Below are positions 14,500 through 42,900 of a stretch of 64,000 nucleotides of DNA, in pieces. The notes below the pieces were generated by a model. That model was given only the letters and a program-made list of their open reading frames with translations, was not told the origin of the DNA and did no database searches. The position numbers and the translations under genes were made by a program. This stretch comes from Bugula neritina. Lineage: Eukaryota; Animalia; Bryozoa. The stretch spans positions 13,701,133 through 13,765,132 of the forward strand of contig OZ037771.1 of assembly GCA_964035545.1 (NCBI GenBank), read 5' to 3'. The number at the start of each line of letters is the position of its first letter. Positions within the stretch are counted from its first letter, which is position 1.

Positions 14500-17400
14500 C
14501 TAAGTACACATGTCTTTGACAGCGTTATAAGTTTGAGTCTCATTGATATGGGTTGAATAAAGTATCACCTCTACGAATTCTCCTTTTGAGTTCTTCTTAG
14601 CATTAATTATCCTGGTAACAGCATAATACTGAACATTAAGCTCGAATTGAATAATGTTTTTAGAAGCCACAATATTTGCAAACAATAAAATATAATAAAA
14701 AAAAGAAAGCAATTATACGAGATTATCGAAAACTGCCCAAGTTTTATGCTTCACTATTTGAAGTTGATGGAACCCATGTATACACATGCCAAGGTTAACA
14801 TCTTTTCGTCCTAGCCTCATGCAATATCAATAAAATTTCAGCAATTTATATTTTCATATTTTAAATTTAAACTACATGGTGCTGTGAAATGCAGAGGACT
14901 GCAGCAATGTCGCTAGAATATCAGACTCACGGTGGTTGGTTGGAAGGAATGTAAATCTCAGGAGTTCTCATCACGTCTGATTGATTCAGCCTTTTTTTCA
15001 GTTTTTCATTCAACACTGCCGGAGGTTCTAAGATAGTGGCGGGATACAGCTCATCAGTTGGCCAGTAGACAGTTAAACGATCATTAGTACAGTCATAAAA
15101 TGGTTCAATAGCAGCAGACATCTTGCAATCTAAACAATGCAAGTAGCGTGGTCACTTAATACAGCACATGCTGTTTTTATATTTCATTAGATTAGAAATA
15201 GCGGGAATTATTATTTGTACCATGCACCAAACTAAATAAAACGAACCTTAGTTTGTATGGAATATATTCATTAAAGTATCAATATGCTCCGATTTTTTTT
15301 CAAACTTACACAATTTTTGGTATAGCTATATAAATAGTTTGAAAATTATTTAAACAGTAACAGCTAATTTTAAAAATATATCTGTTATAAAACTTTTCTA
15401 ATAAAGAGCTGATTGTAGAGAGCGACTATAAAAAGTAGAGAGACCATGCAAAAACAGAAAATGTAACAATACTTCAGAGAGAGAACAAGTAATATAGAAG
15501 ACATAACTTACTACCAGCACAGATCGTTTGAATTTGAGTTCTCCTGTCAGTCAATGTAGATCTTAGTACAGCTCTGCTAACATTACTATTGAGTAAGTCA
15601 CATGTCACCTCATACACTGCTTTGAATGTCAATCTTTTCATTTTCTCAACCTCTAGAAACAAAATATCATTTCAACAGTTAATAGTGCAAAAGCCTGCTA
15701 AACAGATGTATGCAAGAAATAAATTTGCCTACTTAAGTTTCACATGTAACAAAATCTTTTTTTAAACATTTGTTATAGTAGGAGAGGCTCAACGTTGGTA
15801 TTTGATAGATATTAGCTGCTAAAACTGAACACCAAACACCCTCTTTAAAAAATTTTATTTGCTCAAAACTTAAGAACTCTTATATACATAACTATATACA
15901 TATATATATATATATATATATATATATATATATATATATATATATATATATATATATATATATATATATATGTATATATATATATATATATATATATATG
16001 TATATATATATATATATATATATATATATATATATATATATATATATATATATATATATATATATATATATATATATATATATATATATATATATATATA
16101 TATATATATATATATATATACATATATATATATATACCTCAATCTGTGGACAGCAGCTGTTTTGGGGTTTGTCCCCTCATCAGCACAGAACAGAGTACCA
16201 TGGCCCACACCTTCGCAATATATATATATATATATATATATATATATATATATATATATATATATATATATATATATATATATATATATATATATATATA
16301 TATATATATAGGCCTATATATATATATAAATATATATATATACATATAATAACTAATATTGATATTAAATATAGAATAGTAAGATATGGAAACTATATGT
16401 ATATTCTACACGATCATTGTATATTTGATGTATATATTATAGGGGCATGTATACTATACATGCATATACTACAACAAATATAACACATTTTCACTATATA
16501 TAGTATATATGTATATATGTATATATATATATATATATATATATATATATATATATATATATATATATATATATATATATATATATATATATTATATATA
16601 TATATATATATATATATATATATACATATAGTATATATATATATGTATTATATTATACGCTTTTATATAAATAGCCTAATACATTTTACTAAACTATATA
16701 GCATACACCTGCATACATTTATCACATAATATGTATAGATTTCACTCACCACTCAACTTATAAATATTATGTCTCATTCCAACATAGATTGCTCCACCCT
16801 CATTCAACAAAGACCGTGGTGCATCAGGAAGCAAGCTACTCTCTGTACACGGATCTTCTCCTTCAAAGCAGACTGGACCAATCATTCTCTTTTCCATATC
16901 CATAAGCTTGAGCTTTCTTGTGTAATAGTCGGCAACCAGGTACAGATTTGCAGACAGTTGTTCAATCTCACGAGGATTGGCAAATCCAACATTGTCAAAC
17001 GAGCCAATTGCAACACCAAAACTTGATGAACCAGCCAATCGAGTGTTACTAACTGCTCCATCGCTTGACCAGCTCACTTGTGATATGTAATTGTTTCCAT
17101 TAGTTACTAGCAACGCATTTCTTCCAGCCCACTGAAGTTCTCTAGGATAACGGAACCCAGTATTTATTACTGTACTCAGTTCTCCTGTTTTTATATCAAC
17201 AGACCTTAAGGCATGATTATATTGATCAGTTACTAATAGCTTTCCTAGGTTCCTAACATCTACCTGTATTCCCCAAGGGAAATGAAACTGTCCAACCCCT
17301 ACTCCTCCATCTTTGTTGCCTATGGTACCATATGATCCTGCTATAGTTTTGATATTATCATCTTCTCTAGTCAGTAGTTCAATACACTGACCGCCAAAGT

Positions 17401-39969: not shown

Positions 39970-42900
39970 CTAGGTACACGTGTCTTTGACAGCATCATAA
40001 GTTTGAGTCTCATCAACACAAGTTGAATAAAGAATCACTTCCACAACTTCTCCTTTTGAGTTCTTATTAGCGTTAACTATCCTGTTAATAACATAATGAG
40101 CATCAAACTCACATTAATCTTTTAAGTCGAAGCAAACAATAAAATAAAACAAAACCAACAGTAATCATGCAATATTATCAAAAACTGCCCAAGTTCTATG
40201 GTTGACCATCTGCACATCAATTAGGATATCAAGTTTAATATCTTTTTCCAAGTCTCGCCGCAGTTAATAATAAAATTTCAGCAATACTAGTTTTAAAATT
40301 TAAACCACATTATGTCTTAAAATGCAGAAATTTGCAGCAATGTTGCTAAAATATCAGACTCACGATGGCTGGTGGCAAGAAATAAAAATCTCCGGAGTTC
40401 TCAGCACCTCTGATTGATTCAGCCTCTTTTTCAGTTCATCATTCAACACTGCAGGAGGTTCCAAGATGGTGGCAGGATACAGCTCATCAGTTGGCCAGTA
40501 GACAGTTAAGAGATCATTGGTACAGTCATAAAATGGTTCAATAGTAGCAGACATCTTGCAATCTAAACAATGCAAGCAGACAGGTCACTATAATAATATA
40601 GCACAAGCTTTTTTTATATTGTATTAGATTAAAAATTGCTGGCATTATACTAATATTTGTATCATGCACCAAAGTAATTAGAAAATCCTAGACAAGCACT
40701 AAAATTAAACAACACATCTTCTATTGGATAATATATTTTCATTGAAGTATCAACATGCTCCTTTTTTTCCAAATTTACACATTGTATAGTAGCTATAAAA
40801 TGTATATAGCTAAATGTGGATAAAGACTCTATTAGTAGAGAGTTCATGCAATAACAGAAAGTATAACAATACTTCAGACAGAGAACAACGATATACAAGA
40901 TACTCACTATTAGCACAGATCCTTTGAATTTGGGTTTTCCTGTCAGTCAATGTACATCTCAGTGCAGCTCTGCTAACATTACTATTGAGTAAGTCACATG
41001 TCACGTCATACTCTGCTTTGAATGTCAATCTTCTCATTATCTCAGACTCTAAAACTAAAGTATCATTTTAACAGTTAATTGTGTAAAATAAATTTGCCTA
41101 TCTAGTTTTAACATGAAACAAAAGTGTTTTTTTTTATCATATAGTATAGTATAGTATTATAGTATTGATATTGATATTTGATATACATAGACACTATACA
41201 TGCACTATAATAATTCTATCTATAAAATAGTCAGAATATATGGACTGCAGTATATGTATATTCTACAGGATTATTGCATACATTATAGGGGCCTGTATAC
41301 TATACATGCATATACTACAACAGATGTAACACATTTTCACTATATATAGTATATATGTATTATATTATATGCATTCATATAAATAGCTTGATATATTATA
41401 CTAAACTATATAGTATACACCTGCATACATTTATTGCATATAATATACATGTATATATAGATTTCACTCACCACTCAACTTATAGATATTCTTCTTTGTT
41501 GCAACATAGATTGCTCCACCCTCATTCAACAAAGAATATGGTCCACCAGGAAAGAGGCTACTCTCTGTACACGGATCTTCTCCTTTAAAGCAGACTGGAC
41601 CAACTATCCTCTTCTTCATATCCATTAGCTTGAGTTTTTTATTACCATAGTCAGCAACCAGGTACAGATTGTCTGACAGTTTTTCAATATCCATAGGATG
41701 GTAAAATGTAGCATTGTCAAACGAGCCAATCACATCACCCTTACTTGTTGAACCAGCCAATAGAGTGTTACTAACTGTTCCATTGCTAGACCAGCTCACT
41801 TGCGATATGTAATGGTACCAATTAGCTACTAGCAACTGTCTGCCAGCCCACAGAAGTCCTCTAGGAGTAATGAAACCAGTATTTATTACTGTACTCAGTT
41901 CTCCTGTCTTTAGATCAACAGACCTTATAGCCTTATTACTCTGATCAGTTACTAATACTTTTCCTGGGTTCCTAACATCTATCTGTACTTCGAAAGGTTG
42001 AGAAAACTGTCCCACCCCTACTCTTCCATCTTTGTAGCCACTGGTACCACATGATCCTGCCATAACTTTGATAATATTATCTTCTCTGGTCAGTACTTTA
42101 ATGCAGTTACTGATGATGTCTACCAAAACAACATGAGTTGTATTGATTTGTAAGAAACCTGTTACAGGAGATGACACAAGAGTTGAAGTTGTCCGCCCAT
42201 CAGTAGTTAGTAGACATTTATTAGTACCGAGGAGGAGGCTTCCATCATTCTTATATTTATCAACTTCCATATGAAAGGTAACGTAAGAAGTTGTAAGGAA
42301 CAGCTCTGGTTTCTTGAAGGATATGCTGCAATAAATAAGATGATGAATACTTATGAATATTTCAATCTATTAACTAGTAGTTGTATTTGCTGCTGCTGAT
42401 CAAATTAAGAAACTATGGGCTGCAGCAGTTTTATAGTAATTACAGTCACACAGTGGTATATACGTAATATAGTTGTAACATATAGTAGTATTCAGCTGTA
42501 ACATAATATAGCACACAATTTGTAAAAGTATTATGAAACAGCTAGAGTATACAATTTTGTGTAAATCATCAATTTTACTGTTGATCCATAATACAACACT
42601 AGCTGGTGCATTGTAAACAAATTGCTGGAATACCTCAAATTCATGAGCAAAGTTCTATTTTAACAACATATATAGCAGCAACAAAGTGTTAAGTTAACCA
42701 AAACAGTGCGTACTCTTAATTTTGTACACTATACTTGACATGCATAAAACTGTTTTAGCTGTTTACTTTGTAGTATTTTAATTTCTAAAATATAGACAAG
42801 TGTTTCGTGCAGTATTTATCATGCTCAAGCAGTGATTTATTTTATTAGACAGGTAATTTCTGTTTTTAATACGTAAATAGCGCTAAATTATTAAACACAA

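Follow-up and report, generated by a model that had tools for sequence, protein, structure and literature searches.

Introduction

FREPs, VCBPs, SpTransformer, Hydractinia Alr and C1qDC genes lie in tandem clusters that evolve by birth-and-death, carry a variable binding part on a constant frame and vary in repertoire between individuals. To our knowledge, none of these families contains an NHL propeller. In the literature searched, we found no family of this type from Bryozoa, no bryozoan immune or allorecognition receptor family and no paper describing the propeller family reported here. In fungi, the HNWD/NWD NLRs (Podospora het-d, het-e and het-r), whose role is non-self recognition, have a constant propeller scaffold with a few selected positions per blade (PMC4986451). 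Positive selection has also been reported for coral tachylectin-2, in which the sugar-binding residues are conserved and the selection lies outside them (PMC2880987). In NHL propellers, the top face is formed by the b-c and d-a loops and is the ligand face in Brat (PMC4015489). Here, we describe a tandem family of secreted NHL propellers in the bryozoan Bugula neritina, in which the top face is hypervariable.

Results

A tandem array of secreted propeller genes

The window, which is the whole stretch of Bugula neritina DNA analyzed (64,000 nt), contains five tandem copies of a six-exon gene, all on the minus strand. The gene encodes a signal peptide, a six-bladed NHL propeller (exon 3) and a conserved tail of ~150 amino acids. 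The features are as follows.

Copy 1, exons 4 to 6: 13-15 kb left of the window
Copy 1, exon 3 (propeller): 8220..9078, minus; 5-nt frameshifting insertion near 8588-8592
Copy 1, exons 1 and 2: 10039..10241, minus; GT donor of exon 1 lost
Copy 2, exons 4, 5 and 6: 15512-15652, 14931-15129 and 14500-14611, minus; open
Copy 2, exon 3 (propeller): 16750..17606, minus; open, Cys to Tyr at position 92
Copy 2, exon 2: 18505-18557, minus
Copy 2, exon 1: 18665-18685, minus
Copy 3, exon 6 remnant (final ~30 nt): 25813..25842, minus; truncated copy, exons 4 and 5 missing
Copy 3, exon 3 (propeller): 26221..27071, minus; frame open
Copy 3, exon 2: 27863-27915, minus
Copy 3, exon 1: 28027-28047, minus
Copy 4, exon 6 (end of tail, stop, no membrane anchor): 39970..40081, minus
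Copy 4, exon 5 (conserved tail): 40364..40562, minus; 76 genome matches
Copy 4, exon 4 (conserved tail): 40908..41048, minus
Copy 4, exon 3 (entire six-bladed NHL propeller): 41472..42325, minus; 23 positively selected codons within 41491-42282
Copy 4, exon 2 (remaining signal peptide and linker): 43240..43292, minus
Copy 4, exon 1 (signal peptide start, MYWWYIA): 43400..43420, minus; ATG and GT donor conserved in paralogues
Copy 5, exons 4, 5 and 6: 59727-59867, 57969-58167 and 57537-57648, minus; open
Copy 5, exon 3: 63458..64000, minus; runs past the window end, the complete exon being open

The copy 4 model, which was searched exon by exon, is an open frame of 459 amino acids with conserved splice phases, in which no membrane segment or anchor and no YD repeats were found. 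The spliced transcript of a paralogue, P0036, has the same layout, with two short signal-peptide exons preceding the propeller; this transcript evidence concerns the paralogue, and the copies in the window were found in no RNA run. The frameshift in copy 1 indicates either a pseudogene or an assembly error. Broken copies comprise copies 1 and 3 and two more elsewhere in the genome. The family has ~80 genes, with clusters on several chromosomes (C7 and C2), and its propeller proteins have conserved Cys pairs and N-glycan sequons. For the tail, searches of Pfam, the Atlas and homologues returned no match, and its single-sequence structure model (pLDDT, 37) was unusable. Metagenome contigs were scanned twice without a hit, in a set from which close records may have been left out.

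Exon 3 encodes a complete NHL propeller

The structure predicted for exon 3 has 24 strands (pLDDT, 97.7; pTM, 0.93) in six four-stranded blades, with a Velcro closure in which the N-terminal strand completes blade 6. The best Foldseek matches to the model were the NHL domains of TRIM71, NHLRC2 and SOQ1 (TM, ~0.7). In line with this, HMM searches matched SOQ1 (3e-25) and NHLRC2 (4e-22), and a profile search of the PDB returned NHL proteins and Pizza6 and nothing else. The NHL family PF01436 was matched by copy 2 (21.0 bits) and copy 3 (24.3 bits) at a cut-off of 20, and there was no PF01436 match in copy 4. Bacterial look-alikes were present in the Atlas; we do not take these as evidence of gene transfer.

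Across the wide family, the near-invariant residues are Gly, Pro, Cys, Trp and residues of the strand core. No conserved catalytic or metal-binding set was found on the top face. Its variable positions are rich in Tyr, Ser and Arg; Tyr makes up 16% of hypervariable residues, compared with 2% in other loops.

Positive selection is concentrated in the top-face loops

An earlier note on this DNA had proposed that equivalent loops of each blade are hypervariable under diversifying selection on one face, set in a near-invariant scaffold, with the variable residues around a conserved Pro. All the loop variants that it quoted can be read in the five copies on the minus strand; some of them belong to copies 1 and 5, whereas the interval that it gave, 16750-42325, spans copies 2 to 4 only. 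Conservation of the scaffold falls short of invariance (dN/dS, ~0.5, with about one-third of codons near neutral), and copy 2 departs from it with GSFLLGT and DVRNLGK. The fifth variable site has no conserved Pro. Furthermore, the eight hypervariable loops listed were too few: six overlooked loops or sites (positions 15, 35-36, 70-71, 95, 169-171 and 195) also vary, so that all twelve top-face loops are variable.

Selection was analyzed with the codon models M0, M1a, M2a, M8a and M8, implemented in Python (GY94, F3x4) with optimised branch lengths, and selected sites were called by naive empirical Bayes rather than BEB. The sequences analyzed come from the closer members of the family, as opposed to the ~50 more distant ones. 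Among 11 genes of this genome, M2a was strongly favored over M1a (2dlnL, 192), with an omega of ~7 for 9% of codons. The same comparison gave a 2dlnL of 472 for 21 sequences, 71 for the four window copies and 206 for 10 JGI sequences, and M8 was favored over M8a (2dlnL, 183; omega, 6.9). All 23 selected sites lay in or beside the d-a and b-c loops, with all twelve loops represented and none of the sites in bottom loops. These loops form the top face of NHL propellers, with faces assigned from strand order (DSSP) and the published definition rather than from measured distances. Entropy in 27 independent proteins exceeded 1.5 bits at 26 of 90 top-loop positions and at 0 of 46 bottom-loop positions (Fisher P value, 6e-6), and mean pairwise identity was 22% at hypervariable sites and 84% elsewhere.

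The sites were reproducible between data sets. Two independent sets had 15 of 18 selected sites in common (P value, 4e-18), and tree-free dN/dS was 2.6-3.1 at sites that had been set on an independent data set, compared with 0.3-0.6 in bottom loops. A second subfamily (~52% identity) was itself under positive selection (2dlnL, 156; omega, 8.6), and 11 of the selected sites were also selected in it. In contrast to exon 3, which gave a 2dlnL of 181.7 for the same eight genes, exons 4 to 6 showed no positive selection (omega, 0.50; 2dlnL, 1.2). Neither of the outcomes that the note had named as telling against it, a dN/dS of 1 or less at these sites or a scatter of variable residues over the structure, was observed. 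The hypervariability is stronger than had been stated, and diversifying selection is supported. Collectively, strong positive selection acts on ~25-30 residues distributed among the twelve top-face loops, whereas the frame, the bottom face and the tail are conserved.

Repertoires differ between samples of the species

In a conspecific sample from JGI, which may represent more than one colony, only 1 of 27 variants was matched by an allele in the set of 11 scored copies of this genome. The two members of this allele pair are 97.8% identical in nucleotide sequence, introns included, and the remaining JGI variants have at most 87% amino acid identity to the copies here. Changes within the pair fell in 4 of 30 hypervariable codons and 6 of 254 others (P value, 0.014). 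Turnover of the family proceeds through duplication, loss and exchange among copies, and its repertoires differ between samples of the species.

Discussion

One feature of a diversified germline recognition repertoire is present here, namely clustered genes of one family in which positive selection is focused on a single binding surface. The data point to an inherited recognition repertoire that has not been described before, probably with an immune function. On balance, we favor as the likelier reading that the family is a germline-encoded, secreted non-self recognition repertoire, with a putative ligand and putative expression. The top face would be the ligand-binding surface, and each copy would present a distinct, paratope-like surface rich in Tyr, Ser and Arg. 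The target may be a fast-changing foreign molecule in the body fluid or at the colony surface, most probably a protein or surface polymer from microbes, parasites or foulers. The constant tail could couple binding to a common outcome, such as oligomerisation, agglutination, deposition or docking to a cell receptor; this effector step is a guess, because the tail has no recognizable domain. Diversity would arise over generations through point substitution and selection, not somatically. The broken copies count against this reading, and positive selection on a binding face, which fits self/non-self or gamete recognition equally well, also counts against the non-self reading.

Recognition within the species, in which a partner receptor at an allorecognition (fusion/rejection) or gamete-compatibility locus reads haplotype-specific secreted propellers, is an unlikely alternative. 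The animal is colonial, a single allele was shared with the JGI sample, the propeller type resembles the teneurin NHL (Pfam TEN_NHL), and incompatibility in fungi is controlled by WD40 propellers that have four selected sites in each repeat (PMC4986451). However, the proteins here, in contrast to Alr, are not membrane-anchored, and several chromosomes carry clusters with this pattern. In the colonial animals studied, as far as we know, allorecognition has been mapped to a single complex.

We consider it more doubtful still that the genes encode secreted enzymes or ligand scavengers (PAL/gluconolactonase-like), with a pocket diversified, for example, against dietary or fouling toxins, or else lectins. 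Among six-bladed NHL propellers there are enzymes whose active site lies on the top face (PMC4015489), and structural neighbors carry SGL annotations, but the near-invariant residues here are Gly, Pro, Cys, Trp and strand core, with no conserved catalytic or metal-binding set on that face, all twelve loops of which vary. In propeller lectins such as tachylectin-2, the binding residues stay conserved instead of being selected to change (PMC2880987).

That the signal has no adaptive meaning, arising from relaxed loops and gene conversion or from a local mutator (hypermutation, DGR-like), is very improbable and already largely refuted. In its favor, the exon 3 tree is star-like (inner branches, 7%) and disagrees with that of exons 4 to 6, a PHI-type test taken over all sites gives significance (P value, 0.007) and the third base is kept in many selected codons. 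Against it, null simulations in which the genealogy changed every 1-40 codons reached a 2dlnL of 4-31, compared with the 192 observed, which rejects a recombination artefact, the tree-free dN/dS contrast between selected sites and bottom loops stands, and mutagenesis is rejected because silent sites beside selected codons are no more variable (0.128 versus 0.130) and third-position adenines are invariant at sites 155, 227 and 261, contradicting adenine-directed mutagenesis.

A broader and less likely possibility is that bryozoans have a humoral system resembling antibodies, with the NHL propeller as its basis. Secreted proteins with a variable propeller and a constant tail, drawn from gene sets almost non-overlapping between haplotypes, might then determine whether pathogens, the bryostatin-producing symbiont or other colonies are recognized, and one fold would provide the variable receptor extracellularly as well as intracellularly. 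The locus offers a concrete, testable recognition candidate in a model species for fouling and bryostatin symbiosis, and as a defined cluster it makes it possible to ask whether haplotypes relate to colony fusion, symbiont carriage and infection. It is also a natural binding scaffold, with one exon, one stable fold and ~25-30 randomised positions on one face, which shows protein engineers where an NHL propeller tolerates variation.

Comparison with known systems

The Bugula propellers have their fold and repeat motif in common with NHLRC2, SOQ1, teneurin NHL and TRIM-NHL proteins (Brat and TRIM71). Those types are few, conserved and mostly intracellular or within large receptors, whereas the Bugula family comprises ~80 copies of a secreted propeller that stands alone and has a hypervariable top face. 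It also differs from known NHL proteins, to which it has 16-20% identity, in its conserved Cys pairs, its N-glycan sequons and its tail. Membership of the TRIM-NHL proteins was rejected, as signal-peptide exons precede the propeller in place of a RING, a B-box and a coiled coil without signal peptide. The 459-amino-acid secreted model likewise does not fit teneurins, which are type II membrane proteins with EGF, NHL, YD shell and toxin-like domains.

Tachylectins and other invertebrate propeller lectins are, like the Bugula proteins, secreted beta-propeller recognition proteins, but they belong to another repeat family and form no large tandem family with a paratope-like face; no Pfam or PDB match placed the Bugula proteins among the tachylectin/tectonin lectins. 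The HNWD NLRs resemble the family in combining a constant propeller scaffold and a few positively selected positions per blade, located on the interaction face, with exchange between family members (PMC4986451). They differ in being intracellular WD40 proteins with NACHT and death effector parts and near-identical blades that are shuffled within the gene, whereas the Bugula propeller has six divergent blades and is duplicated as a whole gene. With no NACHT or WD40 match and with divergent blades, membership of the HNWD NLRs was rejected. In its tandem multigene organization, birth-and-death turnover and variable part on a constant frame, the Bugula family is like FREPs, VCBPs, SpTransformer, Alr and C1qDC.

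Results

The propeller exon belongs to a large, partly broken gene family. An 855-nt exon is present in five minus-strand copies at 8.2, 16.8, 26.2, 41.5, and 63.5 kb of the window (C7:13701133-13765132), numbered 1 to 5 from left to right. For copy 4, six exons joined at GT-AG splice sites give an open frame of 459 aa: exons 1 and 2 encode a signal peptide, the entire propeller comes from exon 3, and exons 4 to 6 supply a tail of roughly 150 aa that has six cysteines and lacks a hydrophobic end. The phases flanking exon 3 (2 and 1) are conserved in nearly all of 30 paralogues. 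The frame is open in copies 2, 4, and 5. Copy 1 no longer has its first splice donor and carries a 5-nt frameshift, and copy 3 is without exons 4 and 5 and most of exon 6. Outside the window, exon 1 of one paralogue is interrupted by a stop and its exon 5 is frameshifted, and a second paralogue is missing exons 4 and 5. Exon 3 has 111 matches genome-wide, about 80 of them at E below 1e-39, clustered on C7 and C2; the close subfamily numbers 12 copies in the 216-Mb genome, and exon 5 has 76 matches, mostly adjoining those of exon 3. This copy number, clustering, and set of broken members reflect birth-and-death evolution.

The window also holds the following repeats (window positions):

30824-36634 and 46319-52133: a pair of 5.9-kb duplicates, 94% identical, located upstream of copies 3 and 4
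37810-39340 and 60500-62900: Penelope-like (GIY-YIG) retroelement fragments between long (AT)n tracts; the fragment at 60.5-62.9 kb is an inverted repeat (94%)
7983-8100, 15894-16624, and 60498-63444: (AT)n microsatellites in intron 3 of copies 1, 2, and 5

The 5.9-kb segment, probably duplicated together with the genes, contains a Gypsy-like LTR retrotransposon remnant with zinc knuckle, protease, and integrase motifs identified by eye (ORFs 34090-35565 and 50286-50804), as well as a G-rich minisatellite (30.8 kb; 46.1-46.6 kb). In most copies a long (AT)n microsatellite directly follows the propeller exon, and the intron 3 tracts possibly aid unequal exchange. Elsewhere, a locus at C7:14617700-14627600 retains exons 1, 2, 3, and 6 only and faces an inverted exon 2/exon 6 remnant, while C2:24.67-24.85 Mb and C8:5.9-12 Mb carry tandem arrays of more distant propellers, each encoded by a single exon (22-34% identity to the query), with exon 5 matches also present in the C2 array.

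The window copies were found in no RNA run, an absence that does not show silence. P0036 (Logan SRR4125604), a spliced transcript from a more distantly related paralogue, matches the layout of copy 4, plus one extra exon after the propeller; because it is only 92-93% identical in nucleotides to the gene at C7:14594903, it may derive from another cryptic species. The extra exon, shared with that gene (C7:14594903-14597876) and absent from the window subfamily, encodes 57 aa inserted between the propeller and the tail; their DEGVY motif recalls the F strand of Ig-like domains.

AlphaFold2, run on a 75-sequence alignment, predicted 24 strands (pLDDT 97.7) forming six four-stranded blades, with an N-terminal strand closing the ring. 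Profile and structure searches retrieved the NHL domains of SOQ1, NHLRC2, and TRIM71 at 16-20% identity; sequence searches with the gene model, exon by exon, returned no match for the tail. The top surface of an NHL propeller is defined as the side made up of its b-c and d-a loops, and in Brat this is the face that binds the ligand (PMC4015489); our top-face assignment is topological.

Codon models were fitted with our own likelihood code, with site posteriors from naive empirical Bayes. Across 21 sequences, M2a was favored over M1a with 2dlnL of 472 and omega of 7.0 on 9.4% of codons. The same comparison gave 192 for this genome's 11 open copies (M8 versus M8a, 183; omega, 6.9), 71 for four window copies alone, and 206 for ten sequences from a separate JGI sample of the species, bearing out the diversifying selection suggested by the earlier note. 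The 23 sites with a posterior of >0.95, numbered from window position 42324 in copy 4, are as follows:

15, 35, 53, 70, 71, 95, 108, 109, 128, 129, 155, 158
169, 170, 195, 208, 209, 211, 227, 261, 263, 277, 278

Every d-a loop and every b-c loop, six of each, is represented among these sites; 155, 158, and 211 lie in inner strand a, and no site lies in a bottom loop. Likewise, highly variable positions among 27 JGI proteins fall at 26 of 90 top-loop positions versus 0 of 46 in bottom loops (P = 6e-6), so that the clustering on one face expected in that note was recovered. Its quoted loop variants all occur in the five copies; however, the span it assigned them takes in copies 2 to 4 only, it named eight loops where twelve vary, and the scaffold it called nearly invariant is conserved rather than invariant (mean identity over 39 proteins, 84% versus 22% at hypervariable sites). 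Between this genome and the JGI set, which are independent, 15 of 18 sites are common (P = 4e-18). A second subfamily on C2, about 52% identical, is selected at homologous positions (2dlnL, 156; omega, 8.6; 11 sites in common). The comparison with exons 4 to 6, also proposed earlier, gave omega of 0.50 and no signal in eight genes (2dlnL of 1.2 versus 181.7 for their exon 3).

The exon 3 tree is star-like, and copies exchange sequence: two genes 62 kb apart (C7:14145582 and C7:14207884) are 98% identical in exons 4 to 6 (2% different) and 90% in exon 3 (10% different), a sequence pattern pointing to recent exchange of propeller or tail. A PHI-type test gave P = 0.007 for all sites and 0.06 for the scaffold only. 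When the genealogy was redrawn every 1 to 40 codons in null simulations, 2dlnL reached at most 31 (ten replicates) versus the 192 observed, and tree-free dN/dS for this genome's copies was 2.6-3.1 at 25 sites picked on JGI proteins versus 0.5-0.7 elsewhere. Fourfold-degenerate sites differ by 0.128 when no more than two codons from a selected site and by 0.130 when distant, and selected codons differ by 0.59 and 0.58 at positions 1 and 2 and by 0.36 at position 3. Both results point to selection and not to a mutational hot spot.

The JGI relatives come from two metagenomes whose contig names are prefixed AY690838, the accession of the B. neritina mitochondrial genome (PMC2678162). One contig is 97.8% identical to a gene of this genome, introns included. 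When the 27 JGI variants were scored against 11 copies of this genome, a single variant proved to have an allele there; the rest reach no more than 87% identity to any of these copies, with flanking sequence matching at only 84-93%. If the sample is one diploid colony, a lead is that the 27 variants would amount to about two haplotypes whose gene sets hardly overlap. In the sole allele pair, the amino acid changed in 4 of 30 hypervariable codons versus 6 of 254 others (P = 0.014).

Hypervariable residues are rich in Tyr (16%, versus 2% in other loops), Ser (12%), Arg (10%), Asn (8%), and His (7%), and a Tyr/Ser/Arg-type composition resembles antibody combining sites. The net charge of the face spans -3 to +7 across copies, so the copies do not share an electrostatic target such as RNA.

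Discussion

The family combines a secretion signal, a propeller fold, a selected face, a conserved tail, and gene turnover. We propose that the top face of each copy would bind a different fast-evolving non-self molecule, with the constant tail linking binding to a shared outcome. Defense against microbes, parasites, or foulers is probably the role served. The main rival, allorecognition or gamete recognition, would seem a good deal less likely, and a diversified enzyme or lectin is improbable, as the face is without a conserved catalytic or sugar-binding set.

Our literature search, which left subscription journals mostly outside its coverage, found no paper on NHL with Bugula or Bryozoa. By both sequence and fold, the family is an NHL propeller, and it belongs to none of the TRIM-NHL, teneurin, NLR, or tachylectin families. 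Nearest in mode of working are the fungal HNWD receptors, in which positive selection acts on four sites of each WD40 blade at the interaction face (PMC4986451); the selected positions here likewise lie on the putative interaction face. Other invertebrate germline repertoires are similar in mode of working as well.
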